64,000 nucleotides of DNA, from positions 372,001-436,000 of the forward strand of contig MU008174.1 in the NCBI GenBank assembly GCA_010909165.1, given 5' to 3'. Below the pieces are notes generated by a model that had not been told where the DNA came from, made no database searches, and saw only the letters and a program-made list of their open reading frames with translations. Positions 1 through 54,603 of the stretch are shown piece by piece. Made by a program: the position numbers and the translations under genes. This DNA is from Anthoceros angustus. Lineage: Eukaryota; Plantae; Anthocerotophyta. Every line of letters starts with the position of its first letter. Positions within the stretch are counted from its first letter, which is position 1.

Positions 1-413
1 TCCTGCGGCAGCTGAATCAGAATCCGTCTCCACCACTCAAGACCCGGAATCTTCCAGTCCTTCTGCCGCCCAAGCCCCAGACCCAGAACCTGAACCTGAA
101 CAGGCAGCCAACTCTTCCCCAGAGGCAGAGGCCACGGCACCAGAGCCAGAACCTGCACAGGCAGCTTCCACTTCCCCAGAGCTAGAGCCAGAGCCAGAGC
201 CAGAACCTGCACAGGCCGCTTACACTTCCCCAGAGCCAGAGCCAGAGCCAGAGCCAGAACCTGCACAGGCAGCTTACACTTCCCCAGAGCCAGAGCCAGA
301 ACCTGCACAGGCCGCTTACACTTCCCCAGAGCCAGAGCCAGAGCCAGAACCTGCACAGGCCGCTTACACTTCCCCAGAGCCAGAGCCAGAACCTGCACAG
401 GCCGCTTACACTT

Positions 414-469
<56 letters not shown>

Positions 470-1102
470 CAGAACCTGCACAGGCAGCTTACACTTCCCC
501 AGAGCCAGAGGCTACGGCCCCAGAGCCAGAACCTGTCTCCTCATTTTCATCAGAGCCAGCAGAAAGTCCCTCTCCAGGTTCCTCAGAGCCCGAAACTCCA
601 CCAGAACCAGCAGTCCCTGCTCTCCCTCCTATCCCCCTTCCCACTCCAGAGTCCCTCACCCAACTGGACGCAACTCTACCGTCCCTGTTGGAGGCGATCA
701 CTCCGGAAGCATCTCCAGAAGCAGTACAGGCTGTGGAGGTATGAACTGTAGCTGGTTACACTGTACAGTGCCTCCTTCCTTTCGTTCCAGGTCTCGACAT
801 TGATGTCGCTTAGCTGTGGTTTTATCATTTTGTCCAGGCAGTGGAGGGAAACGTGAATCCCTTTCTCCCTCTGTTCGGCATCGCTGGAACTGCATGGCTT
901 ACCACCATCTACGGTCTCAATGAGCTCACTGCCGGCACCAAGGTAAGATCTCCATTCCACCCTCCCGCTGTGGTTTTGCCGTAGTACATGTGACCTTACC
1001 GATGCCCATTCCCTTCAACAGTCTCTGGAAAACCCAACTACCTCCGCCGACGAGTCCCAAGATGGAGCAATCAATGGGAAGCCAACCAAATCTGATGAGT
1101 GA
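1..1102 (+). CDS. 3' part of a gene encoding a Pro/Glu/Ala-rich repeat protein with a C-terminal hydrophobic segment (exons <1-738, 838-942, 1022-1102)
   Basis: Open frame reads [18 protein letters not shown]...([14 protein letters not shown])n...EAVQAVE. GT-AG introns 739-837 and 943-1021 join in frame to [35 protein letters not shown] and [26 protein letters not shown]. One 1-nt deletion near 412 (cttcccagag versus cttccccagag) looks like a sequencing error. Confidence 0.7.
141..535 (+). repeat. Coding minisatellite: (CCAGAG)n interspersed with CCAGAACCTGCACAGGC(A/C)GCTTACACTTCC units
   Basis: Directly visible tandem units encoding PE runs and PAQAAYTS. Confidence 0.9.
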
Positions 1103-2100
1103 AGCCTTCAAGTGAAGGCGTCTAGTAGGGTGGTTTGTAGTTGTTAGCAAGTAGGTAACCCGGTGTGTTTCCTCCAGAGCTACACTTTCCTCTGGCTACA
1201 AATTCCTCTTGCCGGTGGGATGGGAATTGAGTAGGTACCCACACAGAGTTAAAATCACGTCTTTTCAATTTTAAAATATTAAAATAGCCCTGTATTTTGT
1301 GGTCATTTACGTTATGTATGCCATTGTAAACATGATATGAACGTCGATAAGTTGAACCTTGACACCCACAAAATAGAGGTGAAGTAATCCCTCTAGCGCA
1401 AACATAGTAACGCGACACACCCGCACTAGTACCTCCAAGTAGAAGAACCTCCAAGTAGAAGAAGAAGAATAATAAGAATTTTATTTAAGTAGACTGCAGT
1501 CCTTCGACCACAAACCACCACCCTGTCACACCCGCACTCGTGCCTCCTATGTAGCCTGCAGTCCTTAGACGACATACCACCACCTTGTTGGTGCTCTACT
1601 ATAGACCTCCAAGTAGCTCGGAGTCCTTATGTTGGGTTCCCATGTAACCCGAACCCAGAAAAACTTGTGTCACATCACACAAACGACAAGGCACATTTAA
1701 GGTGGTCGGCAGGGTTGATCCCCCTGGGTCGGAGAGTTTGAGTGGGTTTGTTTTTAGGTATATTGGATTTCTCTAACCCAGATCATGCATATCTTGGTAA
1801 AGTCCGTTGTAAGCAACATAAGAGTGAGATCAAAGAGTTCTAATAACATGTATACACCTAACTCCAGTACTTAGCCCTCTCAGCGTGACTTGTGTGTCAC
1901 ATCCTGAATGATCCTTATTGTCAAATTCGTGCACGTTCGCATAGTGTGAAATGTTCTTGCCTTACAAATATAGTTTTGTATCATGCATCCAACTAAATGC
2001 AAAAAAATACATGACTCCTCGTTAAGATTCTTAGGATACTTAAGAAAACAAGGAATCTCCGTCTTCTTCTAGTCCATGCCATCAATTGATAGTAGGATAT

Positions 2101-5100
2101 TGTGGCGCGACTTTCGCTGACGGCCAGCCAGGCGCGCACAATCCCGTGTCGTTGTAGTAAGGAGTTCGTTCCCGAGAGAATGATAAGCTCCGTTTGCCGC
2201 GTTTCGACCGATTCTCACCTTACTTTGCGTCCGCTCAACTTTAACACACGCAATCGTCGTTTTGCGTCTAACTACTCATAACGTTCACCGAAAGGCCCGG
2301 TGTGGCCAAACGTTTAAGGACCCGTTTGCGTCCGTATCGTTCCCGCACGTCACTCGTTCCTTTAGTCCGTTCCTCTCATCACCCTCACTACGCTCATCAA
2401 CCTTGGAAAGAGCGAGTAACTGATCCGGACCTCCTCCGTTGCTCAGCGGGCCTCTCGTCCAGACTCTGCACCCTCCGGAGTTCCTCCGGCTCACCGTTCG
2501 GTCGCTCGATCTTTGGGCGGCTCTGGGCGAACCACGGGTCCCCGGTCGCTCTCCCACACACCACCACACGTTAGGGTCCGTCACGGGACCTTGATCGATC
2601 TCTCCGGGTATCGTGCACCTTTCGATGACTCGGGACTCACGTTAGCATGAAGACACACAAGGTGCGCAAGCGGCATCAACACCAAGAAGATGATTTATTG
2701 AGGCGGCCTCGGCCCTCTTATACTCGCCCAAGTCGGCGTCTTTATTACACCCTATTACAGTGGTGGCCAATCACATGTCGACGCCTACCATCCTATTCCT
2801 CCCTCCTATCTCCTTCGGCGGTGGGCACAGGAAGGTCACAGGTTCCGTCTCGGTATTGGTGGTCAATCTCCCGTCACAGCGATTGGCGCACCCAATCGGA
2901 TGATCCGCGGTGGCCCCTTCCTCTTCCGGAATCACAGCCGGGTTGGGCTCGTGGCGGTCGGCGGCCGCCGTTACCACCGCGTCTTCCCCACAGCCCCGGT
3001 GGGTCCCCTCCCGGTAGGGACCGTGGCGCTCCCCCGTAAGTCGGAGGGACTCCTCCTTGCTTCGAGTCAGGACCTCGGGGTCGGTCTCGACTCAGTCTAA
3101 ACTTGAGTCGCCTTATTTCCAGTCGATGCAGGGTCGGTCTCATCTCGGGGTTCGGACCTCGGGGTCCGAACTTATTCGGTCCGGTCCCAAGCTCGGACCC
3201 CTTGTCTGAGACCTCTTCTTGCTAGGCCTCATCCCTACCCAGGCCCTTGTCTTGGGTGGGTTGGCTCTCCTTCGCGCCCTTTCGGGGCCGCCTCTATCCT
3301 CCGGCGGGTTGCGGTGGACTTACCACGAGGTCCGTTGTATTGGCGCGTCCTGCTCCTCCTGAGGCTCTTCTCCCCGTCGTCTCCAAGCAGGGGCCACTAG
3401 GGTCCCGTCTTGTCCCCATGCCTTCATCCCTTGAGCCTTGGGGTCCGTCCATTTGTGGCGCGAGAGGCTTCAATGCCTTAAGGAGCTCGGCGTGGTAGTA
3501 GGCAAAATCCGAGTCAATTTCTTTGGATTGCCTCTTCCACATGTGCCGGAGCACCGATACTCCTTTCGCCATTGGTGCTCAGGGGCGTCTTTGTCCTTCT
3601 TGGACCATCTCCCTGCCGAGTTTGTCGGTGGGCGGGCGAATCTCGCGAGGCCACAAGGGCGCCTCGGTCACCTCCTGCAACCTTGTTATTGCTCCTCCTC
3701 GTTTCGCTCTGCTGCGACTTACGCCATAGTAGCGGCGCTCCTTCCGCCTTCCTTGGACCGGCTTCTTTTGCGTCCGTATCGTTCCCGCGTCACTCGTTCC
3801 TTTAGTCCGTTCCTCTCATCACTCTCACTCGCTCATCAACCTTGGAAAGAGCGAGTAACTGATCCGGACCTCCTCCGTTGCTCAGCGGGCCTCTCCGTCC
3901 AAGACTCTGCACCCTCCGGAGTTCCTCCGGCTCACCGTTCGGTCGCTCGATCTTTGGGCGGCTCTGGGCCGCCTCCTCGCCTCCTGCACACACCACCACC
4001 ACGTTAGGGTCCGTCACGGGACCTTGATCGATCTCTCCGGGTATCGTGCACCTTTCGATGACTCGGGACTCACGTTAGCATGAAGACACACAAAGGTGCG
4101 CAAGCAGCGGCATCAACACCAGAGAAGATGATTTATTGAGGCGACTCGGCCCTCTTATACCGCCCAAGTCGGCGTCTTTATTACACCCTATTACAGTGGT
4201 GGCCAGATGCATGTCGGCTACCATCCTATTCCTCCCTCCTATCTCCTTCGCGGTGGGCACAGGAAGGTCACAGGTTCCGTATTGGTGGTCAATCTCCCGT
4301 CACAGCGATTGCGGCGCGCAATCGGATGATCGCGGGCGACCCTTCCTCTTCCGGAATCACGCGGGTTGGGCTCGGCGGTCGGCGGCCGCCGTTACCACAA
4401 CGTCTTCCCCCAGCTGGCGGTGGGTCCCCTCCCGTGGGGCCATGCTCCCCGGCGTAAGTCGGAGGGACTCCTCCTTGCTAGTCGGACCTCGGGGTCGGTC
4501 TCGACTCGAGTCTAAACTTGAGTCGCCTTATTCGAGTCGGTCTGTGGGTCGGTCTCTCGGGGTTCGGACCTCGGGGTCCGAACTTATTCTGTCGGTCCCA
4601 AGCTCCGGACCCCTTATCTGAGACCTCTTCTTGCTAGGCCCTCATCCCTACCCACCCTTGTCTTGGGTGGGTTGGCTCTCCTTCGCGCCCTTTCGGGGCC
4701 GCCTCTATCCTCCCGGCGGGTTGCGGTGGACTTACCACGAGGTCCGTTGTATTGGCGCGTCCTGCTCCTCCTGAGGCTCTTCTCCCCATTGCCGTCGTCT
4801 CCAAGCAGGGGCCACTAGGGTCCCGTCTTGTCCCCATGCCCTTCATCCCTTGAGCCTTGGGGTCCGTCCGTTTAGGTGAGGCTTCAATGCCTTAAGGAGC
4901 TCGGCGTGGTAGTAGGCAAAATCCAGTCAATTTCTTTGGATTGCCTCTTCCACATGTGCCGGAGCACCGATACTCCTTTAGCCATTGGTGCTCGGAGGTG
5001 GCGTCTTTGTCGACTTCTTGGACCATCTCCCTGCCGAGTTGTCGGTGGGCCGGGCGAATCTCGCGAGGCCACAGGCGCCTCGGTCACCTCCTGCAACGCG

Positions 5101-8100
5101 CTGTTGCTCACTTTGCTCCGGCTCCGTCGTTTCGCTCTGCTGACTTACGCCCAGCGGCGCTCCCTTCCGCCTTGGCGGACGGCGGCTTCTTTTGCGTCCG
5201 GTGCTCTCGCTCCCGTTCATCACGGCCTTTAGCTCGCCATCTCCCTCTCAGGGCGGTGGGCAACTCTGCCCGTGCGTGCTCGAGTCCTTCTCCATTTCGG
5301 CGTCTGCTCCTTGTTCCATCGCCTTACCTCCTCCAGGTCAATTTGGCCGCTCTATCTCGTTCGTGATCGTGATCACGCCTGCAGATACCATTCCGCCAAT
5401 GGTAACTTGGGCTGACTCGAGGTCTCTTCGGTCTTCCATCTCCCCGCCTTGCTCCACCTCGCGCAGTGGAGATCCTCCATCTCCTTGTCGCGGGCTTCCT
5501 TCTCCTCGGCATGGTGGCCCGCACCGCTCCGCCGCCTCTGCTCCGTCTTGAGTTAGCGCGGCTATCCGTCTCCCTCCACGGTTCGATCACGCCGATAGTG
5601 ATCGCGGTCGGTCTTGACTTCCGCCTCCTCGCCTCCTCCTTCCGCCCGGCTTGGTCGGTCGGTAGCCGCCTCGGCCGGTCGCGAGCCTTCTCTTCTTGCC
5701 GGGCCTCCTCTGCCTCTCTGCGCTACCCCTCTCACTGCTGAGGTCTTGACCAGCGCTTGGGCCTCCTGCACCTTGCTCACCCGGTGAAGAATTTAGTCGG
5801 TCTGTCGAATGGACGGACTTCCCTTCGGCCTCCGGCGTTTCCCTTCTTGATGCGGCCGAGGCTTGGCCTTCCTCCTCGCCTCTGGGCGCCTCCAATTGCT
5901 CTGGAGGAGCACCATGCCTCTGGTGGCTTCTACTTCACAGGTCTTCTCGGTTGTCCCCATGAGACCCCAAACTCTGATGATGGCAGGACCGTGTCTCTTC
6001 CACGGCCGCCATTGGTGAGGCCCCAAAAGTCCGTAGTGGGGCGGGCATCTCACGGTCCGCCAAGGACCTCCATCTGATCCGGTGAGTCGGGGCTGGGTTC
6101 TCGGACCTAATCGGGTCCCTTAGGTCTGATTGGGGTCAGGAGCTTCACCCTCCTTGGCCCTCTTGGCATGCCAATTCCTTATTCGCCCTCTCTTAGTCAC
6201 AGGGCTCGGAGGGTGAGGGGTTCGGCGGCCTTGCCTCTCCCGGTCGGCAGGACCGGCTCAGTGGGGTTCTTTTGCGGTGACCTCCACACTCCTTGGGCGT
6301 CCCTTTACGCTCTTCTCACGCCTCTTGACCTCTTGCCACTCCGTGGGCGGGGCAAACCTGAGCACCGTCAGGAGTCTGCGTTGGTGGTGTGCGTCTTCCG
6401 CCTCTTGATTGCGGCCGTTCGTCGGGGCTCCTCTGCTGCTACCCCTCTCCGCTGCGAGGTCTTGACCAGCGCTTGGGCCTCACATGCACCTTGTTGCTCA
6501 CCCGGTGAAGGAATTTAGTCGGTCTGTCGAATGGACGGACTTCCCTTCGGCCTCGGCGTTTCCCTTCTTGATGCGGCCGAGAGCTTCCTTCCTCCTCGCC
6601 TCTGGGCCGCCTCCAATTGCTCTGGAGGAGCACCATGCGCCTCTGGTGGCTTCTACTTCACAGGTCTTCTCGGTTGTCCCCATGAGACCCCAGCATCGTC
6701 CATGGCGGTGGCAGGACCGCCGTGTCTCTTCCACGGCCGCCAGCAGTGAGACCCCAAAAGTCCGTAGTGGGAGGCGGGCATCTCACGGTCCGCCAAGGAC
6801 CTCCATCTGATCGGAGAGTCGGGTGGGCTCCGGACCTAATCGGGTCCCTTAGGTCCCATTGGGGTCGAGCTTCACCCTCCTTGGCCCTCTTGGCATTCCT
6901 TATTCGCCCTCTTAGTCACAGGGCTCGGAGGGTGAGGGGTTCGAGGCGGCCTCTCCCGGTCGGCAGCAGGGCTCGGAGTGGGGTTGCGGTGACCTCACTC
7001 CTTGGCGGCGTCCCTTTACGCTCTTCTCACGCCTCTTGACCTCTTGCCACTCCGTGGGCGGGGCAAACCTGAGCACCGTCAGGAGTCTTTGCGTTGGCGG
7101 TGGCACCGTCTTCCGCCTCTTGATTGCCCAGTTCGTCGGGGCTCCTCTGCCGTTGTGGTGGTGTTTGGTTGTCGTGGGCCGTCTCTGCTGCCTTTGCTCC
7201 GTGAGGCACCGAGAGGAGGCGGGGATATCTTCCACACTTCCCTAGGTGGTGAGGGGTCCGTTCAGACGTATGGTCAGTATCCCTTCGATCGTCCTCCTCC
7301 GGACCCGTTTGGCCCTAGTGGGCCTCTACCTCAGGCGCCTTTGCCGCTCTTCTGGTAGGGCCGCCAGCCTTCCGGGCGCCGCTCTACCTCCCCATCCTTG
7401 AGAGGTCGTAATGTCCCCATACATGGATCGGGTATGGGGATAGTCCGCAGTGGCTTCTCGCTCCTCGGCTTGGGCCTCTGGTGAACTGGCGAAGATGATC
7501 CTTCCCCAGTCGCCCTCTTGCCCCGCTGCAAGCGCATGCAGGAACACCAACAAATTATCACCAAGGTGATCCACCTTGGTGAGCAAGTTCCAGTGGACAA
7601 TGATCCGGGCCACTGCCCTCACCCTTCTGTCCAGCAGGTCCGACATCAACCAGCCGTTGGTTGTCCGCTGCGTTCCGGGCTTCAGCATCGCCGCCCTTGC
7701 TGCCTCTATCTTTCCCCTCGCCTTGAGGGGCTCTGGGACTACGCCCCCAACCTCCTCCGTTGGGCGGTTGTAAGCCGCCCTCAGGACCTCCAAGGTCCAT
7801 CTCCTGGGATCCTCCCGGAGGTTCTTGGACCGAACCTCCTTGTTGGCCGCTGCCAACATCTTCCGGCGAACTCTGACTGGTGACATCACAAACGCCCGCA
7901 TGTACCGAACACGCCAAGTGCCACTCCTCGACCAATCCTTCCGCCTCCTCCATCCCAAAGTCCGGATAGCGCGGGTTACAATGTTGCGCTCTACCGGGTT
8001 CCATGGCTCCCATACCTCCGCAGCCTTTCTGGGTCCCATCGCCTTCTTCTCCTTTCTTCGCCAGGCCGATTGCCCGAGATCGCCGGCACGGCGCGCTCTT

Positions 8101-8704
8101 CACGCGCTCACCGCTCCAACCCCCAACGATGAGCCGCCAAGATGCCTAAGCATTCAAGAGATAGCGCGGAGGCGGGTTGCGGGCGCAAGAGACCGCGAGA
8201 ATTGTCTCGAGGTCGCATGCAGAAATGACCCTCCTCGCTGCTAGTAACTGCCATGGAGGGTGCCTCTTCCTCAGAATCGCGAGGTCCGCATGGCTTACTC
8301 GACCTTACGCCGACGCCTGCCGCTGCCGCACCCGCTGGGCGTGAATACTATAATACACCCGCCTCGGCCTGCCCCGCTCCGCAGATTTCCACTCGGGGCC
8401 GTCCACGTGGTGCCGCTCAGTCTATCTTCACGACTCAACTTCTAAATTACTTTCCCTGGCGTACTTATCCTGTTTTGACCCGGAGTAGGGTCCGGACTTA
8501 TCCGATACTCCCGCAGCACCGTAGCTCGCCGTAGTGGTACCGGGGTCCGTTACCCACTCCGGAGTCCGGAGTATACTCCGGAGCACAGTCCGGAGCACCG
8601 TCCGCGCTTATTCCTCCTTTTCCGCCTTATTTTATTCTTCGGACCTACGAAAAAAACAAAACCCCACTTATTTCCTAACCCCCAAGGGAAGTCCGTAGCC
8701 CACA
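2101..8704 (-). mobile_element. Giant solo-LTR-like element (copy 1) with internal ORF; TGTGG...CCACA termini, 5-bp TSD GATAT
   Basis: TGTGG at 2101 and CCACA ending at 8704. GATAT at 2096-2100 and 8705-8709. Excision restores the host reading frame. There is no internal pair of terminal direct repeats. On the minus strand, TATAAG is at 2717-2722 and AATAAA at 2694-2699. Length is about 4.4 kb once internal duplications are removed. Confidence 0.85.
3294..8039 (-). pseudogene. Frameshifted long ORF of element copy 1: N-terminal conserved domain (DPRRWTLEVLRAAY, RTTNGW, DWGRII), low-complexity linker, Glu/Arg-rich coiled coil, C-terminal IDSDFAYYHAELLK
   Basis: ORF 7326-8039 plus fragments down to 3294. 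Homologous to 51818-54326 (same N- and C-terminal motifs) and more distantly to 11088-14007. Confidence 0.7.
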
Positions 8705-9949
8705 GATATACTTGTGCAATTCAATATAACTCCTACCCCGGTATTTCAACATCTTCACTCGCTTCTCGATCGTGAAGCCGCATACGATGGGCGCCCAAAA
8801 ACGTTCCTTGGACGCCCATCGTGTGCGGCCTTTGGACCTACGAAAACAAAACCCACTTATTTCCTAACCCCCAAGGGAAGTCCGTAGCCCACAGATATAC
8901 TTGTGCAATTCAATATAACTCCTACCCCGGTATTTCAACATCTTCACTCGCTTCTCGATCGTGAAGCCGCATACGATGGGCGCCCAAAAGCGTTCCTTGG
9001 GCGCCGTGTCGGCCTTTCTGGACCTATGTCAAAACACGGTATAGGCGCGGCTGCCCCATTATTCACTACAATGGGATGGGCCGTGGCGGTGCCGTCCTCT
9101 AGGCCCGACAATTGAGGGGCACACCGGTGCCTTCCATCGAGCTGAACCCCTATGGTGACATCTAACAAGGTACTCCTTTCACCATATATTAGGTGATCAT
9201 GCAGGTGAATAGAACCTTTACCCCTGACGGGGATCAACAAGCACAGAAATAAAGATGTCATACTCACTTGACGGTTGTACACTCCGCATATACCAAGGGT
9301 CATGCTTCGCGAGGCATGATCCAAGGCCAAAACAACAAATAGCTGGACAAAAAAAAAAAGAAGAAAAAAAGACATGATCACGTGGTGGGCACTGGCTTGC
9401 TGGCGCCCTCAAGGAAAGAGACTGTGCAGATAAATATGATGGGCAAGCAGCCATCGGAACGTCTTCAGCCATGGCACATCTACGCAGTCTACCTTGATCA
9501 ACTTTCGCTTAGTATTTCTAATGTGCTCTTTAGTCTTACACAGAGCGTACATGCTGAAAACATATTTCACTTTGGAATCTTCACATTGTTGAAGTTTTTT
9601 AGCGTTTAATTCATATGTTTTAAAAGAGCTGTACAAACAAGGGTTTATTTAAGCCTTCAAGGAAAGAAAAGGCTATTCAAAACGACTTTTAAGGGTCCTA
9701 CCTGAGCGCAACTAGAACACCTCTTGGGTGCTTGTGGAACGCAAAAGTTTGGGCCACTAGTTCAAGTTAGTTTGTTTTGGAACAGGTCCAAATTCTTTTG
9801 GTTAGAAATAGTTTGGTGGAAACATGCTGGAACTTTCTTGTTCCTTTTGAAGCCGGAACTATAGGATATTGTCGAGAAGGCAGAGAAGATATGCAATGAA
9901 AAAGAAACGGGTCAAAACGACCTTCTAGTGAGGAGAGAAGGGAACCTAC

Positions 9950-10220
9950 ATGAGCGGTAGGAGATGTGCTACCGTGGTAGGTGGTATCCTACCACCGCAT
10001 GAGAAACTCCTACCACGGTAGGCGCGGGTAGGAGTATAGCCTACCATCATAGGAGAGCGGTCCAGCTAGCATTTTGATCACCTACCGACATAGGAGTAGG
10101 TCCTACCATGGTAAGAGAGGGGTAGAGGGAGCCTACCACTGTAGGACTAACTCCTACCATGGTTGGAGAGGAGGAAAAACTCCTACCGTGGTAGGAGAGT
10201 GTCCTACCACCGTAGGAAAC
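9950..10220. repeat. Array of palindromic CCTACCNNGGTAGG motifs
   Basis: Repeated cctaccacggtagg / cctaccatggtaag / cctaccgtggtagg. The motif recurs at 11016, 12116-12298 and about 13660. Confidence 0.85.
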
Positions 10221-11087
10221 AAGTTACTAAGGAAGGAAGTCTATGTTCTAGGAAGGATAAGCTTGCTATATATGGGGTCTTTTAGTGGCCTAGATAAATA
10301 GACCAAAATAGGAAATTAGGAAAGTAGAGGCTAATTTTCAGCAAATAGAAACAAGGAAAATAGGGGAAATGGTATTTTAGCATAAGGGGACCTAGGAAAC
10401 TAACATCAACGGTGGGAAGGGTGCCACGTGGCACACATCCAAGGGTGCAGGAAAATGGGAGTTACCCTTCTTAACCCCAAGTGTCATACATGATCCGTTG
10501 CATGTGTGTGGAGGAAGCCAATTTTGAAAGTGGAAGACGCCCTCACTACAAGAAGGCGCCGCCACATCGCGAGCTCAAAGAGGCCCCCACACACCATCGC
10601 GCCGTACCCACGCCCGTGCCGAGCTGAAGAAGGAGGGCGCAAGTTGGGCAACGGAGGAGAAAAGTCATCAGGACACCAAGAGGAGGTGCAGGAAGAAAAA
10701 TAGAAAGAAGGAAGGGAAACGAGGTGCAAGAAGCAAACCACACCTCCCTAACTTTGCAAGAGCGATAGAAAGGGTGGGGCGTGGCAGGATTGCAAGGAGA
10801 TTATGAAGGAAGAGCTTCCAAATTGTTGTGGCAAGTGTAAGAGTCCGTGAGGTACTTTGGAGGAGGATTCCGTTTCAAGTCACAACAGGAGGAGTTGGGG
10901 TTTGGAAGAGCCAAGGTGTAAGGGCCAAGTGATTGAGAGCAAGAGCAAGGCCCAAGGCATGGTGAACAGGTGCAAAATGCCAAGAAGAAAGAACGCCTAC
11001 CGTGGTAGGAAGCTAGCAAGTGGTGTAAGAGTTACAAGAGAAGCACTCATTTTCCTCAATTTTGTGCAGGAACTCAACAAGGAAGCC

Positions 11088-14007
11088 ATGACTAAGCCTA
11101 CCACGGCGAAGGGCAAGGACGTGGTTGCCAAGGTTGGGACGCCCACCAAGGGAGGTAGCGAAGGAAAGGACAAAAAGTCTAAGGCAGGAGATGCAGGCTC
11201 CAGGGGATGGAAGTTGGATATGCCGTAATTTACATGCTTTGCAGGACAAGTATCTTCAAGGGGCCTTGCAGATTTCAGGTCGTGGGCGGCCGACGAAAAC
11301 ATCTAGTTGCAATGGGCCTATGGAAGACACTGGTCTTACACCAACTTGGAATTGTTTGAAGAATGTTTTGTTAACTTACACCAAATGGAGGAAGAACTCG
11401 CTGCCTTGGCAGGCAAGAACACAAGGACGGACCCACGGTGTTGGACGATGAGAAGTATAAGGCAAGTATATGGTAGGCCGGATAGTGAAGATAGTGGGAT
11501 CACCCTTATCAAAGGGACGAGTGGAGGAAAGTGTGCAACTACGCAGATCTACCTAAGGGGGCCTTCACACTCATGCAGGGGGGCATAAAAGCCAAGACCA
11601 AGAATGGATGGCGGGCTGACCAGGTACTGGAACCTAAATGGAGGTTGTTCACAAAAATTGTCTTAGGCTTGGTGAGCAACCAACGCGTGTCATATTTTAG
11701 CACTACCTTCCTGCATTTCTTCTGGAAAGTGACTCAAGGAGCAAAACCAGATTGGGGGCTGATCATGTATGAGGCCTACACTTACCACCGGGAGAAATTG
11801 TCGAAGCCTAACGCATTGGATGAAGGAAGTCCGTGGCCATGCTACCTCAGCACGTACTTGGTACATCTATGGGAGGTAGAGGGGTTGCTAATAAGCAAGG
11901 AGTTAAATGATTCTAAGCACCCCTTCAACATTGTGTACTTAAGGCCGGAAGCGGACCATAGTTTGCTTAGTGCCTTACAGGTGAAGGAGGCACGAGCAGC
12001 ACTACCTGGAACGCTACTGCTGGAAGGAATCCCTCCGAAGGATTTGCAAGAGGAGGTTGCAGGAAGACCCGAGATTTGGGTCGTGGAGAGTGAAGATATG
12101 GAAGGAGGGATGGACCCTACCATGGTAGGAGCAACTCCTACCACGCTAGGAAGCACACCTACGCGGGTAGGAGGTGTGCCCACAGTGGTGTGGGATCCAT
12201 AACACTCCCTCATAAGAGAACCTACGGTGGTAGGAGCTAGTCCTACCACGGTAGGAGACAGGCCTACGATGGTAGGAATGACTCTTACCACGGTAGGAGA
12301 AAAGAGAGGTCATGGGTTGAAAGCTCCTAGGCAGGAGGAGGTAAGAAGGTGACCGGCCTCGAGAGGTGGGCGAGCGGATGGAACCATGGTGGGAGAAGTT
12401 GCTCCATCAAGTGATGAGCGGGGAGCTCGTCATAGGGAGGTGAGGGATGTAAGATCCCATGAGAAAGGCAAAGGCCTTGAGTCTCCCTGGAGCAAGGGAG
12501 GAGACTTGGGTGTTTTGGAGCAGATGCTGCGCATAGGGAAAATGTTCAGCAAGATCGATATGGAAGCGGCCAAAAGGAGGGTCGACCTCTTGAAGACGGA
12601 GGCGCAAAAGACAAAGGCATACCAAGCACGGGAAATTGCGGGTAGGTAAGCGGAAACACAGCTGCAGGAGGATACTATGAGGATGGAGGCTCAGGTGGAG
12701 CACTTGGAGAAGAGTCTTGAAGCAAGCAACAAGTTGCTTCACCTTTTCATCGCGTGCTGCCAGCTGCTTGGTAAGAGACTTGTTCTCTCTTACATAATCA
12801 TCTACCTCTTGTCCACATGAGGAACACATGAGAGAAGAGGGTAGGAGACAATCCTGCACTGCTGGTGGAGGAAAGGAAGAAGCAAGACAGGTCCCAGCAG
12901 CAAATGAGGGCAGCACAAGGGTGAGTGGAGAAGGTCATGGCCACTCAAGCTCTAAAAATCCGTGACTTGGAGAAGGAGTTGAGAGAAACCCGCCGGAGTT
13001 TGGAAATAAAGAAGGTAGAGCTGGAAGAACAGACACATTTGATCCGTGGATTGGAGACGGAGCAAGAAGCCCAGCAGCAGGAGAATGAACGACTCCCTAT
13101 GAGGATAGCGGAGTTGGAGAAAGAGAGAGTAGAGGAGGAAAACCGTCATGAGACGGTTGTGCATCGTATGTTGGTGGTGAGGGAACAGAGATTTCGAGCT
13201 GATTATGCCTTACAGGGGAAGTTGATCCACCAACTACAGACCGAGAGAGTGGAGAACACAGCTCTTCATGTGTGGGTTGGAGAGCTAACCTTGGAGGGGG
13301 ATGCTTACAAGAGTAAGTGTGAGCATAGAGTGTGGCTTGAAGATGATGAGGAATTGGAGATGGCACTACAATGATTAGCAGCCCATCTTCACAATAAGGT
13401 ACTCAAGGCAACTAACGAATTGTTGCGACTTGCTGAGAGAAGGATGTTGGGACCCCATGATGATGACAGGGAGGCCCTTATGCAAGTCCAACCAAGACCC
13501 TTAGACTTGGAGAACGCCACAAGCGACATGGATCCTGAAGATGTGAAGGGTGAAGGGGCTCCACGACAAGAAGGAGCGAGTGGAGCTGGAGGGGCATCAC
13601 CGAAGGAAGGAGCCACCTCAAGGAGGGGTGGGGAAGAAGAAATGGCCCCGGTAGGAACTTCTACCGTGGTAGGAGAGACACCTACCAGCGTAGATCATCA
13701 GGAGGAAGGAGCAAGTGAAAGGGCTGCTGGGGGGAGTGCAATGGCAGGGGAGACAAGTACCTTAGCCCCTGCAGGAGGTGACAAGGAGGGGGCTGTCCCG
13801 CTAGAAGGGAGTGGAAAATCGCAAGGGGACACCCAACCTTCTAACATGGGTGTGGGAGCAAGAAGCTCACTTGCTCCACAAGTGAGAGGAAGGGAAGCAG
13901 TAAGCCAATGGCTAAGAGAGCCCGGGCTATTTTATTGGAGGAGGAAGCTCCAAGTAGGTAGCAAGATACGAAGGGGGATTCATGAAGGGTCCCTAGATTT
14001 AGCTTGA
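11088..14007 (+). pseudogene. Disrupted long ORF of element copy 2: DPRCWTMRSIRQVY / KTKNGW / DWGLIM domain, PTxVG repeats, long coiled coil
   Basis: Consecutive plus-strand ORF fragments 11307-11588, 11531-12202, 12386-12649, 12925-13374 and 13420-14007. Motifs are colinear with ORF 7326-8039. Confidence 0.7.
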
Positions 14008-15480
14008 AGACATGGGGCAAGATGCCACTTGGAGGAGACTTCCCTTGGAGGGAAACAAGCATAAATGCTTGTCAATCAAGTAGTGGTGTGTAGACTAGCT
14101 AGATAGGAACTTTGGCAGGAGCCATTAAGGCTGATGTAGGTGAAGACTACTAGAATAGAATTTTACCAGAGATGCTTCAATGTCAGAACTTAAAGTCTGA
14201 TAGTAGGATATATTAAAATAGGGTGTAAAGCGGCGTAAGGAAGGCGCGCCAGGGGGAGGTCATATGTGAGGTCCTCCCTATAAAAGGAGGAAGCTTTGTG
14301 AAGAAAAGTATCGTGTCTTGCGCTCCCATCCTCCTGAGTCCTTCACTTTGTGTGCAGGAATTTCGTGCCGGCTACACAACGCAATGTCTGGTAGAGAGGG
14401 AGTACGCGACGATCGGAGTGTTGGGCAAAGGGCTTGCTCTCTACAAGCGCCCGTACCAGCTGCTCCCCTTGTGAATGATTGCTGTGTGAATTGCTTTGCT
14501 TTGAGTATGTGGCAATGCTCAAGGAACTCTCGGCTTGAGGGTAAACTGCATGGAAAGACTCCCTGGAGGTCCTCGCAGTTTGGTGCAAACCACATAGCAA
14601 CCGGCCCTAGGAAGAACTCATTGATCTCCGGACGGACTCTAGGCAGTTGTGCCGTAAGGGCGAGTTGGAATTAATGAGCCAGCAAGAGGTGTTAGAGTAG
14701 GAGTTTGTGGAAGGAGAAGGATTAGATGAGTGGAAAGCAAGAGAGCGTTGTTGGTTGAGGAGGTTGAGAAGAGGATTAGAGTGTAGGAAAAGTGGAAGGC
14801 CCAAGGCAGAGCCTACGAGACGAATCCCAAATCTGCGGCAAGAGGGCGCTCCCAGTGTCGGGAGAGCTGGTCTTAGGAGTAGGGATAAAATCACGGTGTG
14901 GGTCAGGGTTCCTGGGCGCTCGTGGCGGTCTCCTTGCTGCTAAGACATGACCTGCAATTGTGTTGTTTTGTTGTAGGTCGAGGATTGATGAATTTTCGGA
15001 GCAGTGCAGGTGGTGCAGCTGCTATAAGGGGGGAAATTAGTAGGCGCCTTGCTTGTTGAGGTTAAGGGAGTGAGTAGATGATTGATCTCCTAAGATTCGA
15101 CCGTTCACACAAGTCTCATGGGACGAAACCCAACGTACTGAGCGACAGTGGGATAAGTGTGGCCACTAGAGGGTGAATCTCGGAAGCCCCAGGGTTTTCC
15201 TCCCATAGTGCTCCACAAGCTACCTTCCTGTCAAGTAAGCCTATGGATGCTCGGTGGGCATAGGGTCGTCTTCAAGAGGAAGGTGTTCTCTCCAACGCAT
15301 TTAGTTGAGGGAATCCCTCTAATGTCCTGCAAAGGACTGGAACGCCTTTTCAATCAGGGTGTGGTTGATCCAGTCTGCTGTGGAGGACCATTGAGAGTCC
15401 GGTAGCAAATGTGTGAGCTGTACAAGAAGCATATATCCGCCTTCTCCATGCACCATCACCATCAGTTTAAATTTAAGCAA

Positions 15481-15813
15481 CGATGTAGGCTACACCTCTA
15501 TGTCGAGCACACTACAATTGAGGATAGTGTACAAAGTCTGAAGGTCCTCGAAAGAAAAGGGCCAAAGCATATTCAAAAAAGTGTGTAAATGAGCAACACA
15601 CGATAAGAAAACCCAACAAACCTCAGAACAGAGTGGTAGCCCATGTACGATGTAGGCTACACCTCTATGTCGAGCACACTACAACTGAGGATAGTGTACA
15701 AAGTCTGAAGGTCCTCGAAAGAAAAGGGCCAAAGCATATTCAAAAAAGTGTGTAAATGAGCAACACACGATAAGAAAACCCAACAAACCTCAGAACAGAG
15801 TGGTAGCCCATGT
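15481..15813. repeat. 167-bp tandem duplication
   Basis: cgatgtaggctacacctc... starts at both 15481 and 15648 and the two copies are nearly identical. Confidence 0.9.
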
Positions 15814-19040: not shown

Positions 19041-21177
19041 TCATACACCTAGCTTGTCCCGCCAGAACTTCAGCTGCTCTGCCACCGCGTCCCGTCCAGT
19101 TGAGCCGTAAGATCGGAAGTTGCCAATGGCGTTCTCGACTCCCAGAAAGTTGTACACATCACCATCGATGCTTGGGTTGATGGCCTTGAACTCATCCAGG
19201 GACAGCTCAGAGAGCGTGACTTGCTTGGCCACGGCCTTCGCCACTGCTTTCCCGACGATGTCATGGGAGGTGCGGAAGGGGATGCCCTGCAGATGGAGAG
19301 GGTTAAGGGTTTAGGTCTGAGGTTCAGAACAAACCAGAAGCAAAGACAGTTTGGAAAAGGGGCGGATGCCTTGTCTGACCTTGAAGACGAGATAATCAGC
19401 CATGGTTGTTGCATCAAGGTGGCCAGCAGGCAAGGATTTCAAAATCCGGCTCTTGTTGAAGGAGATGTTCTGTGCAAACTCAGTTGTCACCTCCAGAACG
19501 CCTGTGATGGTCTCAACGCTGTCGAACAAAGGCTCCTTGTCCTCCTGCAAGCTTCAAGGGTTAGCTTCATTTTTCATTGCTCGCTTTGGAGGTTGTGTGG
19601 GAGTGCAAACAGGTACCTGAAGATCACGGTTGTAAGCCTGAGGCAGGCCCTTGCACAGGACCATCAACGTTGTCAAGTCCCCGATCACACGGGCAGATTT
19701 TCCTCGAACCAGCTCCATGGGGTCCGGGTTCTTCTTCTGCGGCATGATGCTACTTCCTGTGGACACAGCATCGCTGGGTGTGATGAAGCCGAACTCCTCA
19801 GTTGCCCACAGCACCCACTCTTCTGCTAGCCGGGACAGGTGAATGCCGATGATGGCGTTTGAAGCGAGCAGCTCTATGAGGAAATCCCGGTCTGAAACTG
19901 CGTCAACACTGCAGCCCGGGGTCAGGATGATATCATACATGCAGACTCTATGATAGATAGCGAAGGGGAAGGCAAAGGGGAGGGCTTTCCTGACGCACCT
20001 GTTTCGAAGAGGAGCAGTGAAGCCCAGATTGGTTGCAGTGTGATATCGGTCAATGGGAAGCCCAGTTCCAGCAAGCGCGCATGCCCCAAGAGGTGAGAAG
20101 TTCAGACGAGCTCTGCAGTCGGTCAGCCGTCCTGCATCACGCTCCAGCTGGGGAAGGACGACGAATCAGGCAGGAACTCATGGACCCACTTCCCAGAACC
20201 ATCAGACCAGACACAAAGACATCCGCTTCCAAAAAGGAGAAGTGCAGCCACCAACCTGCTCCACATATGCAAGCAAGTGATGCTGGAGAAGAATTGGCTG
20301 TGCCCTCTGCAAATGTGTGTAGCCAGGGACCACCAGGTCCTGGTTTGCAACAGCCAGCGACACCAACGATTTCTGCAACAAAGAGAAGAGAATCATTGGT
20401 GAGCAACGAGAACATCATCAACCAGCAGCCCGTCATCAAAGCATTGAGAAAGAAGAATTCAAACCTGAAGCTTGAGCACCCGCTCCACAATCTCATCAAT
20501 GGCATCCCGACACCACAGCCTCACATCAGTCACCACCTGGTCATTCCGGCTCCTGGCAGTGTGCAGCTTCTTCGCAGGCTCCCCAACCAAGTCGATAAGA
20601 GCAGCCTCCACATTCATGTGAACATCCTCCCTGTCCGCCCTCCACACAAATTCCCCCGCCTCTATCCTCCTCTCGATCTCCTCCAGCCCCCGGTATATGG
20701 AGTCACAATCCTCCTTCGTCATGAGCCCCTGCACAAACCCACCTCCCACATTGCAGCCACAGTCCCCAATTCCACCACCCACCAACAAAAACCTCCAATT
20801 CCCGTCTTCCAGAAATTCTATCTCCACAAGCCCTTCAATTCCTTCACCTGCTTGGTGAGCATGGCGGCGTGTGCCCGGCTCCCTGCGAGGTCATGCTTGT
20901 AGAGCTTCCGGTCATAAGATACGGACTGGCTGAACTTCTCCACGGCCGGGGTGACGCTGTCCTCGAACCGCCCGCCCCAGAGCTTCACCTCCTTCTCCTC
21001 CCGCGACTCGGCGGCCATTGCGGCGGAAACGCGAAGCCCAGGCCTCCTCCTCCTGGCAGCGAGCAGCCCAAAATCCCACCCAGTCCCGCAACTTCGGAGG
21101 GCTTCGGGCATGCCCGTCGCATGTCGCAGCATTCCATTCCCGCCAGCGACCGGAACCAGGCCATACAGCCCGCCCAT
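19041..21177 (-). CDS. argH: Argininosuccinate lyase, plastid-targeted; exons 21177-20848, 20728-20465, 20372-20256, 20147-19999, 19908-19617, 19544-19380, 19286-19041
   Basis: Motifs [40 protein letters not shown] (fumarase/ASL signature) and YNRDLQEDKE. All introns are GT-AG and in phase. The start could alternatively be ATG 21132. Confidence 0.96.
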
Positions 21178-21378
21178 CACTCCCAGTCCAGGCCGTGACG
21201 TCCGATTCGCACTCGCCTGGAGCTCGCCACCGGAGCGCGAAATCTGGCGCTCTCTTAGAGTAGGCCGACACTTGGAGGCTTTATAGCCGGTGGGACGGGG
21301 AGCTTGAGACGCGAGGCTTGGCCCCCGCATCTCGCAGATTCGGGAGAGCAGCACCCTTGACAGGGCAAGGCGGGATTC

Positions 21379-31201: not shown

Positions 31202-31869
31202 CGCACAACATGTGCATATCTGGCCTGGCCTCCTACTGGCTGGATACCCCAGCTCACCTTGTAGTCAGCAGATGAAGGCTGTGTGATGATGTTGCACGAC
31301 GCTCAAGCCTTCGTGGACAGACTCGTATGCTGCAGCCTGACTAAAGGACGTGACGTACGGTAGGCTAACCGTCTGCAGGCACATGCATACAGGTTAGTCT
31401 GAGCTGTGCAGGCGTCACTTTCGGCTCCGCGGTTATCTTGCTGGGATCTCTGTGTGGTATGTGACATGCCCCCAGTGCCAAGCAGTACAACTCTTGCATT
31501 TCTGCTGAAACAGATATACCTATTTGTGAATGATGTATCATGCCTGCCACCTGTGTCCCAAGACTAGACTGTGGTCCGACTGCTATGTTTCTGTAATCCG
31601 CTTAACAAAGATACCACTGAGATCGCGTTCCGAAATCGAAAACCTTCAACATTTGCGGCTGCTCGCCAGTAACGAGCAGTGCTGCTGTGTCCGATGGTGT
31701 TTTCCACCGCCTTTTTTGTTCATTCCTTGAGAGGTACCTTTCCCGATAGCAGGCATTAATGGGCACAAGTATCTATGTGCAAGCCCATCCGATAGTCTAT
31801 AGGTGGGATCATTGGGATGGACTGCGGTTACCTCCACAATAGACGGCATGGAGTCACGGCGGCCTATAC

Positions 31870-51123: not shown

Positions 51124-54100
51124 TGTGGACCACGGACTCTCCCCGGGGGTTGGGAATGAGTTAGGTTTTGTTTTTTTCGTAGGTACGGAGTACAAAATAA
51201 GGCGGAAAGGAAGAAATCAGCCCGGAGTACTCCAGATCGGCCTGACCGCACTCGAGTAGGTGAAGGACTCGGAGTAAAGGACTCGAGCACACTGGAGGAG
51301 CTCCGGACCACGCCGAGTATCGGGATAAGTCCCACCACACTCAGGCGGGGCAGGATAGATAAGTACGCCAAGTAAAGTAACTTAGAAGTTGGAGCGTGAT
51401 TTATGTGGCCGAAGCCACGTGGGCGGTCTTGAGTGGTAGACGGCATGCACAGACTGCACAGGGTGCCAGCCGCCGTTATGGCGGTATTCACGCTCGAGGC
51501 GCCTCCGGCGTAAGGTTAGAGTTTGCGAAGGCCGCAGGTAAGCGAAGCGTAAGCGGGAGTAGGCCATGCACCTGAGCAGCGAAGGGACACCCTCCCGCTC
51601 CACGACTACTCCCGACGTCGCGACCTGGAGGGTAGACCATTTCTCTTTGTGACCTCGCGATGATTTTCGTAGTCTCGCGCGCTCCGCCACCCCGCTCTTT
51701 GGCGCTATCTCTTCGAGCGCTTATACCTGTGGCAGCTCACCTTCGTGGTTGGCGGCCAAGCGGGCGAGGGAGCAACAGCCAATGCCGCCAGGGCCAACTG
51801 TGAGGAAAGACGCAGCGATGGGACCCAAGAAGGCCGTGGAGGTATGGGAGCCTGCGCTGGTGGAGCGCAACATTGTCACCAAGAGATACCCGACGGACCC
51901 CGGCCGGAGGAGGCGAGGACTGGAGAAATGGCACCTGGACATCTTCAGCATGTTTGACGCCGGCTGGCCACACTTGTCGAGAATCGCCAGAAGATGCCGG
52001 GCCGCCAACAAGGAGGTCCGCCTCCGTGTGGAGGAGGACCTAGGAGGTGGACCGTGGAGGTCTGAGGCGGTTTACAATCACTCGGTGGAAGAAATTGGGG
52101 TGTAGTCCGGGCCTCAAGGTGAGGGAAGGTTGAAGCGGCGGCGTCTTTGGACCGGGACGAACGGCCGGTCAAGGGCGATGTCGGACCGATATCTTTGGTG
52201 TTCTGCCGCCCTCGGCAAGCGGGCCGGCGGGGCATATTATCCTCGCCGGATCGCCGTAGCCGAAGCTACGGTTCGAGAAGCCGCCTCCGTCAGCACTGTC
52301 TCCTTTCCTCATCCATGTATGGGAACACCTCAACCTCCTGAAGGAGGGAGAGGAGGAGCGGCCCTGGGTTACTGCCCGCCCGGTTGGCGAGCAAGGCGCC
52401 AGAGGCAGAGGCCCGGCCTCCTAAGGCCAAACGGGCCAGGGAGGAGGATGATTGGGAGGGGATTCCGAATTCCATCCGACTGGAACGGACCCCCTCGCCG
52501 CCCCGAGAGGTATGGGAGGATATCCCTGCTTCCTTCCTTCTGGTTCCAGAGGCGGAGGTGCCCGCGCCGGATGGAGCACCTACGGGAAGGAGCTGCCGGC
52601 AACACCTACCCGGCCAAACCGCCCACTGGCAGAGCCACGCGGACAGCGAGTCAGTCAAGAGGCGGAAGGTGGCTCCACCAAACGGCGCTAAGGAGCGCAC
52701 CAAGATTTTGCCCCTACCCACGAGTGCGGGAGGCTGAGGAGGCGAGGAGGAGAGGAGAGCGGAGGGCCGCTCAAGGGGTAGGGGGACACTGGCAGCAGCC
52801 ATATCCGGAACCCATCCTGTCTCCTACAAGGAAAGGGAAACGCGCCAGCTCCCGGACCCCCTCGCCGCCACCAAGCCCGAAACGAAGGCGGGCGGAGAAG
52901 GAGTTGGCGGCCAAGCGGGCCAAGGAGGTGGAAGGGCCGGACCTGGGCACTCAGGACCTGAGGGTCCTGATCAGGTCCGGAGAACCAAGTCCGGACTCAC
53001 TCGGACGTGCGGTCCTTAACGACCGGAAATGCCCGGCCCCTACGATTCTTGGTGTGCCACTTTAGCCGTGGAAGAGACACGGCGGGTCCTGGCAACCGTC
53101 ATGGACGGGATGCTCTGGGGTCTCTGCGGGACGGCAGAGAAGACCCAGGAGGTGGAGGCAACCAGGAGGCGCATGGTGCTCCTCCAGGAGCAGGTGGAGG
53201 CGGCCCAAGAGGCCAGGAAGAAGGCGGAATCCCTCGCTCGGATCGAGGAGGGAAAGCAGCGGGAAGCAGAGCGGGAGGTCCGGTCTATTCAGCAAGACCG
53301 GACCAAAATCCTTCAGCTGAGCGAACAGCTGAAGCAGGCATAGGAGGCCCAAGCCCGAGCGGAGGACCTCTGCAGACGACGGGAAGCGGCACAGAGGGAG
53401 TTGGAGGAAGCCCGGGGACAGGCGGAGCGGGCTCGAGACTCGGCCGAGGCGGCTGCAACAGCCGCGGTAGCTGGTGAAGGCGCGAGGCGAGGCCGCGCTA
53501 AAACCGTGATCATTACCGGCGCAGATCGGAACTGAGGAGGCGGCAGAACAACACCAAGCCGCGGTAGCTCAGGTGAAGGCGGGCGGAGAAGGATAGGAGC
53601 GAGCACAGGCCAGCCGTGAAGAGAAGGAGGCCAGCAACAAGGAGATAGGGATCTCCGGGCTCAGTTGCGTGGAGCGGAGGAACGGCGGCAGGAGATGGAA
53701 GACCGCAAGGAGACCCTGGAGCTACAGCTCCAAGATACAATTGAGCGGAACGGAGCTCTTCGGGGTGTGATCGCGGATCACGAGCGGGAGGTAGAGCGAC
53801 TCCAGCTCTGTTGGAGGGTAGAAGAAGTAAGGCGATGGAACAAGGAGGCGGTGGCGTCATGGAGAAGGACGGGCGAAGCACGAAACGGCAGAGTTGCGGA
53901 CCGCCTGGAAGGAGATGGCGAGCTTCGTGCCGGATGAGCGGAGGAGCAAGGGCCTTGGACGCAGAAAAGAAGCTTCTGGTCCAGTTGAGGAAGGCGGAGG
54001 GGGAGCGCTGCGCCATGGCAGGAAGGTTGGCAGCAGAGAGGAAACGACGGAAGCTGGAGCAGGTGGAGCAGCAACGGTTGCTGCAGGAAATAACGGAGGC

Positions 54101-54603
54101 CTCCCTCGTGGCCTCGCGAGATCCTGCCCATCTCCAGCTGACAAATCTGGCAGCAGAGACGGGCCAGCAGGCCGGACAGCACGCTCAGCTACCGGAGCAC
54201 CTATGGCGAAGGGAGTATCGAGTGCTCCGGGCGCATGTGGAAGAGGCAATCCAGCAAATCGACTCGGATTTTGCCTACTACCACGCTAAGCTCCTCAAGG
54301 AGTTGGAAGCTTCTCGACCGCCATAATCGGACCTGGGACCTCAAGGGTCAAGGAGTGGAAGGAGAAGAAGGGCACGGACAAAGACTGGGCCTTGGTGGCC
54401 TTGTTCGGTACGATGAGGAGAGGAGCCCCAGGAGGAGCAAGATGCGGCCAACATAACTGACCTTAAGGTAAGCCAGCCGCAACCCGCCAGGAAGGATAGG
54501 AGCGAGGACCCCGAATGGGGTGGGGAAGGAGGGAACCAACCGGACCCAAGCCAGGAAGGAGGGTCGGTGAGTGAGGATGGGCCCCCAACAGTCGAGGGTC
54601 CGG
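51124..54603 (+). mobile_element. Giant solo-LTR-like element (copy 3, same subfamily as copy 1), 3'-truncated; disrupted ORF 51818-54326
   Basis: Begins TGTGGACCACGGACT, homologous to the reverse complement of the 8704 end. ORF runs MGPKKAVEVWEP...VERNIV to IDSDFAYYHAKLLK. Homology stops near 54600. Confidence 0.8.

Follow-up and report, generated by a model that had tools for sequence, protein, structure and literature searches.

In the 64-kb window that we analysed (64,000 nucleotides of contig MU008174.1 of Anthoceros angustus), the unit at positions 2101–8704 is probably, as its termini and internal layout suggest, a giant solo LTR derived from a Ty3/gypsy family, with a protein gene in its U3. 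According to this explanation, an LTR of about 4.45 kb would have come from a giant-LTR retrotransposon, probably a Ty3/gypsy element of the Athila/Tat type, and recombination between the two LTRs would have removed the interior and left the solo LTR behind. Read on the minus strand, the U3 would extend from the TGTGG end over a conserved terminal block, the palindromes and a G-box, and would also hold the gene, which encodes an N-terminal conserved domain, a coiled coil and a conserved C-terminal motif. R would be very short, marked by a TATAAG box and, 18 bp after it, AATAAA, and would be followed by a U5 of about 570 bp that ends in CCACA. In the full element, the genomic RNA would contain the gene within its 3′ U3, and reverse transcription would place it in both LTRs. 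Its own transcription could start from signals located towards the 5′ end of U3 and use the poly(A) signal of the LTR. Everything testable in the window agrees with a solo LTR. The sequence shows the boundaries, the TSD, the lack of gag/pol, the conserved domain and the arrangement of the signals, while the LTR identity of the unit, the use of its promoter signals and the role of its protein are inferred.

Boundaries and Layout of the Unit

The insertion at 2101–8704 is real. Its ends, TGTGG at 2101–2105 (plus strand) and CCACA at 8700–8704, and the perfect 5-bp duplication GATAT that flanks it on both sides were found just as an earlier sequence-only reading had described them, and G+C content is about 0.60–0.63 within the unit vs. 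0.40–0.52 in the flanks (Table 1). Since the 64-kb window should by chance alone contain one perfect TGTGG/CCACA/TSD pair, the boundaries rest on the TSD and on family comparison together, and the 5′ boundary is independently confirmed by a diverged second copy in the window (copy 2), which shares the same TGTGG start within different flanks. The same reading had called the boundaries exact, partly because removal of the unit seemed to restore a host reading frame. That frame spans no more than 50 codons from stop to stop, another one stays open over 47 codons, and the argument proves nothing; what stands behind the boundaries is the TSD and the TGTGG shared with copy 2.

The 5′ part of the unit is rich in palindromes, as had been claimed, and holds G-box-like and TATA-like sequences upstream of the ORF. 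At the other end, the TATA box, the AATAAA and the R/U5-like stretch of about 600 bp were all located in the order that the sequence-only reading had given. The putative TATAAG and AATAAA module is found, in one orientation, some 600 bp before the unit reaches its 3′ end; a similar TATAAGG occurs in a more distant relative in the window (subfamily 2) at 15023–15029, about 190 bp from its end. The placement of this module after the ORF fits a putative U3/R/U5 layout.

Table 1. Features of the unit, listed from its 5′ to its 3′ end on the minus strand, and its relatives in the window.
Feature	Position	Strand	Remarks
Whole unit as assembled	2101..8704	-	6604 bp; 5′ end at 8704 (TGTGG), 3′ end at 2101 (CCACA)
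Target-site duplication, right copy GATAT	8705..8709	.	
Third tandem duplication, exact, 2 x ~200 bp	8637..9026	.	Crosses element/flank border
Conserved 5′ terminal block	8600..8704	-	82% identical to copy 2, from common TGTGG
CCGGAGT/ACTCCGG palindrome cluster	8565..8604	.	5′ part of unit
G-box-like CCACGTGG	8403..8410	.	Kept in both unit and copy 2
TATA-like TATTATAGTATT	8344..8355	-	~300 bp upstream of ORF ATG
ORF, 237 codons	7326..8039	-	Conserved core residues 76–183 (window 7491–7814) match P0001 and subfamily 2
Conserved domain continued in another frame	7387..7554	-	HCGLSPYPIHVW-like motif, matched in P0001 and subfamily 2
Tandem duplication, exact, 2 x ~718 bp	5716..7150	.	89% identical, differences mostly indels; covers start of coiled-coil-like region
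Tandem duplication, exact, 2 x ~1440 bp	2325..5200	.	90% identical; 18 substitutions vs. 71 indel events
C-terminal conserved coding piece, IDSDFAYYHAELLKAL-type motif	3297..3578	-	Common to copy 2; duplicate at 4887–5144
Second AATAAA	2741..2746	-	
TATAAG box	2717..2722	-	Downstream of ORF; proposed LTR promoter at end of U3
AATAAA	2694..2699	-	18 bp downstream of TATAAG; proposed U3/R boundary, short R
R/U5-like non-coding tail	2101..2690	-	Ends CCACA
Target-site duplication, left copy GATAT	2096..2100	.	
Subfamily 2, diverged	9733..15217	+	Same layout; 1 kb from unit
Copy 2, diverged, same family	51124..54603	+	70–82% identical, same TGTGG start

Tandem Duplications and the Assembly

Six exact tandem duplications, with differences that are mostly indels, were found in the 64-kb window, two of them inside the unit and one across its border. 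The one across the border contains a further copy of the final 68 bp of the unit and of the TSD, at 8830–8898, and that at 2325–5200 doubles the 3′ part of the ORF together with the TATA/AATAAA module. Exact duplications make up 2.16 kb of the assembled 6.6 kb. The two internal ones, at 5716–7150 and 2325–5200, are probable assembly artefacts, so that the true unit would measure about 4.45 kb rather than 6.6 kb. The size of about 4.4 kb given by the sequence-only reading is matched once the duplications are discounted, while the unit as assembled spans the full length given in Table 1. A split-direct-repeat layout (A-coding-B-A-B) was also considered for the unit and rejected, as the repeats adjoin each other precisely and have no counterpart at the 5′ end.

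The Gene and Its Conserved Domain

The N-terminal domain of the ORF is a real conserved protein domain, with matches to P0001, a protein from another organism, and to subfamily 2. The reappearance of the HCGLSPYPIHVW-like motif in a different frame at 7387–7554 indicates a frame break near 7500, and the last ~50 of the 237 codons probably lie out of the ancestral frame. Beyond these open codons the gene, as assembled, is interrupted by frame changes. Hence the long ORF with a conserved domain and a coiled coil that had been announced survives in its domain but not in its length, being open for 237 codons and broken thereafter. Comparison of the unit with copy 2 gave dN/dS of 0.21–0.36 in the main coding pieces; control pieces lie at 0.4–0.8, which makes the selection signal modest.

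The 237-codon ORF was found in no RNA run. Matched against the unit, two public runs yielded 80-bp unitigs only and confirmed a high copy number; an independent run from this organism likewise shows the family to be highly repeated, with a unitig depth of up to about 3000. That each solo LTR leaves a self-contained gene in the genome is unproven, given that the putative TATA-like box upstream of the ORF is not conserved in copy 2 and that the gene is broken as assembled.

Among 1.84 billion proteins, P0001 is the single relative of the N-terminal domain, and on its contig, L001, a coiled-coil ORF also comes after the domain. Neither the 237-aa ORF nor P0001 nor a six-row profile retrieved anything besides P0001 in protein searches, an exact look-up of the ORF product found no other contig, and the coiled-coil ORF of L001 was found on that contig only. 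No relatives were detected when metagenome, viral and prokaryote contigs were scanned with protein patterns, nor when metagenomes were scanned with a conserved terminal DNA pattern. Pfam at E up to 10 remained blank for the ORFs of the window and for P0001, and no profile HMM match at the same threshold was obtained to Transposase_32 (PF20167), ATHILA ORF1 (PF03078) or PMD (PF10536); weak leads towards them come from language-model look-alikes, with scores of 0.85–0.89, and from fold comparison. On the structural side, a PDB profile search gave a chance-level match only, a model of low confidence had a single weak match (TM 0.35/0.42) in the atlas, which is a lead only, and AlphaFold2 modelling of P0001 from a shallow alignment reached a mean pLDDT of 49 with some confidence at residues 130–200 only. 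Our guess is that the protein may be an oligomerising accessory factor related to the Transposase_32/ATHILA-ORF1/PMD-type domains of plant transposons.

Other Copies in the Window

The first 100 nt of copy 2, from the TGTGG at 51124, are 82% identical to the unit. This copy is interrupted at about 54604 by copia-like sequence; its 3′ part is absent, and the remainder does not lie in the window. In subfamily 2, TGTGG is followed by an array of palindromes and a TATA box; then come a broken ORF, about 3 kb long, a second TATA box and CCACA. Its ORF combines an N-terminal domain as in the unit with a coiled coil. Its similarity to the unit is detectable at the protein level only, and no clear TSD was found around 9733–15217. 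No gypsy interior is present in the 64-kb window and none of the three units adjoins one; likewise, no paired copy, PBS or PPT was seen within the window.

Alternative Explanations

Several familiar categories can be set aside from the contents of the unit. It is not an autonomous LTR retrotransposon, having neither gag (CCHC) nor pol (protease, RT, RNase H, integrase) domains: Pfam found no family in 15 translated pieces of the unit, including gag, pol, DDE or other transposase in any frame, and no CCHC (zinc knuckle) or YxDD motif occurs in it, in line with what had been reported from the letters alone. Nor is it a non-autonomous LTR element of the TRIM/LARD type, as it has only internal tandem duplications and no terminal direct repeats; a comparison of its first 700 bp with its last 700 bp gave no higher score than shuffled sequence, which bears out the earlier statement that a terminal pair is absent. 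Retrozyme or RNA-gene cargo was ruled out by Rfam and tRNA scans of the unit, both of which were blank. A further alternative is a DNA transposon, cut-and-paste but non-autonomous, from Ginger or some other integrase-like DDE family whose ends read TGTNR. It would suit the TGTGG ends, Ginger elements starting with TGTNR, and a TSD length of 4–5 bp would be compatible. However, the inverted termini of the unit extend over 5–6 bp only, of which 5 bp are perfect, the best local match between its two ends is no better than shuffles, and the Pfam result extends to DDE and other transposase domains. The sequence-only reading had named long terminal inverted repeats or a DDE domain as signs of such a transposon; both were looked for in the unit and neither was found, and this explanation is largely refuted and highly improbable.

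That the unit is instead a complete single-gene mobile element of a new class, with TG..CA ends and its own gene, and mobilised by a retrotransposon-type integrase in trans without an LTR pair, gag or pol, appears unlikely to us. In its favour, all three units in the window stand alone, and the protein family is almost absent from databases; however, an excess of solo copies is to be expected of long LTRs, which recombine easily. Moreover, no replication route is known by which an RNA copy that lacks terminal repeats could regain its ends, and a TATA box and AATAAA downstream of the ORF would have no role in such an element, whereas they are a hallmark of the U3/R border. A different doubt concerns the word solo rather than the word LTR. 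The assembly is unreliable in the region of the unit, and the solo state could itself be the product of an assembler that collapsed a full-length element with two near-identical 4.4-kb LTRs. The duplications inside the unit and over its border, among the six of the window, indicate that the assembler struggled here, but the errors observed are duplications and not deletions, and both flank junctions are present along with the TSD, which makes a collapse quite unlikely.

Comparison with Known Elements

LTRs are usually regarded as non-coding control regions, the textbook exception being a retroviral gene such as MMTV sag, and an LTR with its own protein gene is unusual for plants. If the solo-LTR reading is true, a plant retrotransposon lineage holds a large conserved gene in its LTR, and does so across several diverged families as well as in at least one other organism. 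Two gene copies would be delivered with each insertion, each solo LTR would retain one of them with its own termination signal, and an accessory function could outlast its element. Such a gene would matter for the ways in which elements counter or exploit host silencing, for gene annotation in repeat-rich plant genomes and for the cause of LTR length.

One close likeness is to MMTV sag, which encodes a superantigen. As proposed for the gene of the unit, it lies on the sense strand within U3, reaches both LTRs through reverse transcription and stops before the TATA/poly(A) module; nef of lentiviruses and bet of foamy viruses overlap U3 as well. These three belong to retroviruses of animals, whose LTRs measure about 1.3 kb and whose ORFs have about 320 codons, whereas the unit comes from a plant, with a putative LTR of about 4.4 kb and an ORF of probably 800–1000 codons. 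They have no sequence relation to the putative gene of the unit.

As a putative accessory gene of a plant LTR retrotransposon, the gene also resembles ORF1 of Ogre and the env-like and antisense ORFs of Athila/Tat. The additional ORFs of plant Ty3/gypsy elements that have been reviewed (PMC7264820) sit between the LTRs, and a term search of this review found no mention of an additional ORF inside an LTR. The gene of the unit would differ from those of Ogre, Athila and Tat in lying inside the LTR.

Giant LTRs as such are familiar from LARD/Sukkula of barley, with about 4.5 kb, and from Ogre, with up to about 5 kb. Like the putative LTR of the unit they measure 4–5 kb and have many solo copies, but they are non-coding LTRs, not reported to encode a protein. 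Sireviruses, by contrast, are Ty1/copia elements with much shorter LTRs and no gene in them; their palindromic motif arrays upstream of the TATA box recall the clusters of short palindromes in the putative U3 of the unit.

Boundaries of the Insertion

The insertion studied here (the unit) is read on the minus strand, with its 5′ end at 8704 and its 3′ end at 2101 in element orientation. The TGTGG...CCACA ends and the perfect GATAT target site duplication (TSD) described in the sequence-only reading are both present, and G+C content is 0.60-0.63 within the unit versus 0.40-0.52 in the flanks. The 5′ end is fixed independently of the TSD because a diverged second copy of the family (copy 2) begins with an identical TGTGG in different surrounding DNA, with 82% identity to the unit in the first 100 nt and 70-72% overall. 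For the 3′ end as predicted, the evidence is the TSD plus the CCACA terminus of a diverged relative with a like layout (subfamily 2). When every TGTGG/CCACA pair 2.5-9 kb apart in the whole window was scanned, GATAT was the only perfect TSD, about one being expected by chance; the TSD therefore counts only when joined to the family comparison. The termini form a perfect inverted repeat of 5 bp, and in comparisons of the two ends, inverted and direct, the best local match was no better than shuffled controls, in line with the earlier statement that terminal direct repeats are lacking. The claim that removal of the unit restores a host reading frame was given no weight, as the piece concerned spans 50 codons from stop to stop and another frame stays open for 47. 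The insertion is real, as are both its termini and the conserved domain of its protein.

Features of the unit and its surroundings (positions in the window)
Feature	Position	Strand	Description
Unit	2101-8704	-	plus strand: TGTGG start, CCACA end; GATAT immediately outside both termini
ORF	ATG at 8039	-	237 codons
TATAAG	2717-2722	-	downstream of coding region
AATAAA	2694-2699	-	18 bp after TATAAG
Tandem duplication, exact	2325-3776 = 3767-5200		90% identity; largest of three touching the unit
Tandem duplication, exact	5716-6436 = 6431-7150		89% identity; in the unit
Tandem duplication, exact	8637-8840 = 8830-9026		93% identity; spans element/flank border
Further tandem duplications, exact	15480-15813, 31819-35496, 38255-40104, 44573-48232		unrelated sequence; 0.17-1.8 kb
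Subfamily 2	9733-15217	+	TGTGG, CCTACC-N4-GGTAGG palindrome array, TATA box, broken ~3-kb ORF, second TATA box, CCACA
Copy 2	51124-54603	+	
Ty1/copia element	41883-50898	+	145-bp LTRs, 97% identity, no gaps; gag and RVT_2 domains
Copia-like fragments	54604-56316		gag-like ORF (+), integrase-like ORF (-), judged by eye
Host exon	20818-21540	-	resembles argininosuccinate lyase N-terminus, by eye; no Pfam hit
Host exon	26880-27545	+	NAD-dependent epimerase/dehydratase, Pfam E = 1e-11
Minisatellite	77-535		GC-rich; CCAGAGCCAGAA-type units, spacings 12-125 bp; one frame would encode Pro-Glu repeats

Tandem Duplications and Probable True Length

The copies of the largest duplication in the unit differ by 18 substitutions and 71 indel events. 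Among the further duplications, the copies of the three largest (the last three listed) differ mainly by 1-3 bp indels, and one substitution is the sole difference within the remaining, 167-bp pair. Gap openings outnumber mismatches in three duplications outside the unit, one of which covers the coding region of the Ty1/copia element; in contrast, the two LTRs of this element differ by four substitutions and no gaps. We read the duplications as probable assembly artefacts, for example gaps filled from uncorrected long reads, so that the real unit would measure about 4.45 kb, close to the 4.4 kb proposed earlier for the de-duplicated unit. It also follows that frame breaks within duplicated stretches are possibly errors and that assembly of this region was difficult; both the unit's assembled length and some of its "long ORF" are distorted in this way. 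The indel-rich duplications appear to be artefacts of a systematic kind, and broken ORFs or element lengths in windows of the Anthoceros angustus genome should therefore be taken with caution.

A Conserved Domain in a Broken Gene

The long ORF reported earlier holds in part: it carries a conserved domain and is followed by coding-like pieces in shifting frames down to ~3297, one of them with a conserved C-terminal motif common to the unit and copy 2, but it stays open for 237 codons only and the gene is broken as assembled. One break, near 7500, lies outside the duplications, and judged against relatives the domain resumes there in another frame.

On sequence comparison the N-terminal domain is a true protein domain, because it is kept in distant relatives, is accompanied in one of them by a coiled-coil ORF, and belongs to a gene whose main coding pieces show a modest reduction in dN/dS. 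It recurs, detectably at the protein level only, in the subfamily 2 ORF, which also has a clear coiled coil. Exactly one relative (P0001) was found among 1.84 billion representative proteins, with 34% identity over 108 residues (E = 1.2e-4); it is encoded on L001, a 4.9-kb contig in a sequencing run of another organism, where a 324-codon coiled-coil ORF comes after it in the two-part layout of the unit. Metagenome, viral and prokaryote collections yielded no relatives. In comparison with copy 2, the main coding pieces, three in number, have dN/dS values of 0.21-0.36, and controls (other frames, non-coding terminus) run through the same biased procedure give 0.4-0.8, so the selection signal is modest. 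All comparisons were made with natural copies. L001 also bears an old tandem duplication (2938-3813 / 3946-4832; 75% identity, with substitutions and indels) that takes in the 3′ portion of the coiled-coil ORF and the adjoining downstream sequence; its position echoes the 1.44-kb duplication of the unit, which may be coincidence.

Pfam was blank for the protein up to E = 10. Among the language-model look-alikes of P0001 are PMD and DUF1985 clusters (0.87), and among those of the subfamily 2 ORF are Transposase_32 (0.89, 0.87) and ATHILA ORF1 (0.85). In the ESM Atlas the closest predicted fold, matched with a low-confidence model at only TM 0.35/0.42, is a plant cluster with an ATHILA domain in 17% of members. 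These are three weak, partly independent leads in agreement, not family membership; as a tentative working guess, the protein may be an oligomerising (coiled-coil) accessory factor like those of Athila/Tat-type gypsy elements.

Signal Layout and the LTR Reading

The 5′ part of the unit holds a conserved terminal block, the palindrome cluster expected from the sequence-only reading and a conserved G-box-like CCACGTGG; it also has a TATA-like box, for which copy 2 shows no conservation. The 3′ order of TATA box, AATAAA, long tail and CA is likewise borne out, with ~590 bp of non-coding sequence from AATAAA to the terminal CCACA. A TATA box whose poly(A) signal falls at the expected start site or shortly before it is known from LTRs with very short R, RSV and MMTV being retroviral examples; an ordinary gene would have no obvious use for such a module at its 3′ end. 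A 553-nt contig of a related family member, from run X2, which we guess is RNA although it may be DNA, is equivalent to ~2702-3230 and shares the conserved GTGTAATAAAGACGCCGAC block and TATA-box region; it ends near the AATAAA, too weakly for a poly(A)-site call. Public RNA runs yielded no sequence of the unit itself.

The unit is probably a solo giant LTR with a gene lodged in its U3, the simplest reading because TG..CA ends and a 5-bp TSD occur together with no coding capacity for transposition. As noted before, gag and pol are missing: none of 15 translated pieces from both strands matched a Pfam family, no frame contains a CCHC knuckle or YxDD motif, and scans found no Rfam families or tRNAs. 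This rules out an autonomous retrotransposon, and the absence of any direct match between the ends above shuffles rules out a short-LTR element of the TRIM/LARD type. A long-TIR DDE transposon is ruled out by the 5-bp inverted terminus and the lack of Pfam families, and a DDE transposon in general appears highly improbable. A new kind of single-gene unit, in which the TATAAG/AATAAA module would have no role, is unlikely. The same LTR collapsed by the assembler is quite unlikely. Within the window no gypsy interior adjoins any of the three units. The family is highly repeated, with word depth up to ~3000 in one public DNA run, whose 80-bp unitigs are silent on structure. Alternatively, transcription may start at the upstream TATA-like box, placing the gene in a very long R.

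For the solo LTR with a U3-borne gene, the closest functional analogue is sag of MMTV, a gene lying in U3 in sense orientation; nef and bet overlap U3 and are also analogues in position, but all three belong to animal retroviruses, whose LTRs are much smaller. Elements with giant LTRs are already known, namely LARD/Sukkula and Ogre. A full-text literature search returned no plant case of an ORF inside an LTR. Known additional ORFs of plant elements sit between the LTRs, and a 2020 review of them, examined by term search, has no mention of one inside an LTR (PMC7264820). Novelty is conditional on confirmed LTR pairing: transposon specialists would find a gene-in-LTR architecture notable, but the single copy here cannot prove it.

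Neighbouring Sequence

Subfamily 2 lies head to head with the unit, 1 kb apart, with TATAAGG ~190 bp from its CCACA end and the other TATA box after the palindrome array near its 5′ end; no clear TSD was seen, the flanks reading GTGCT and AGCTA. Copy 2 is cut off at ~54604 by copia-like sequence, and its remainder is absent from the window. It begins 225 bp past the 3′ LTR of the Ty1/copia element and is independent of that element, whose interior shows a threefold assembly stutter. The host genes sit between transposons.
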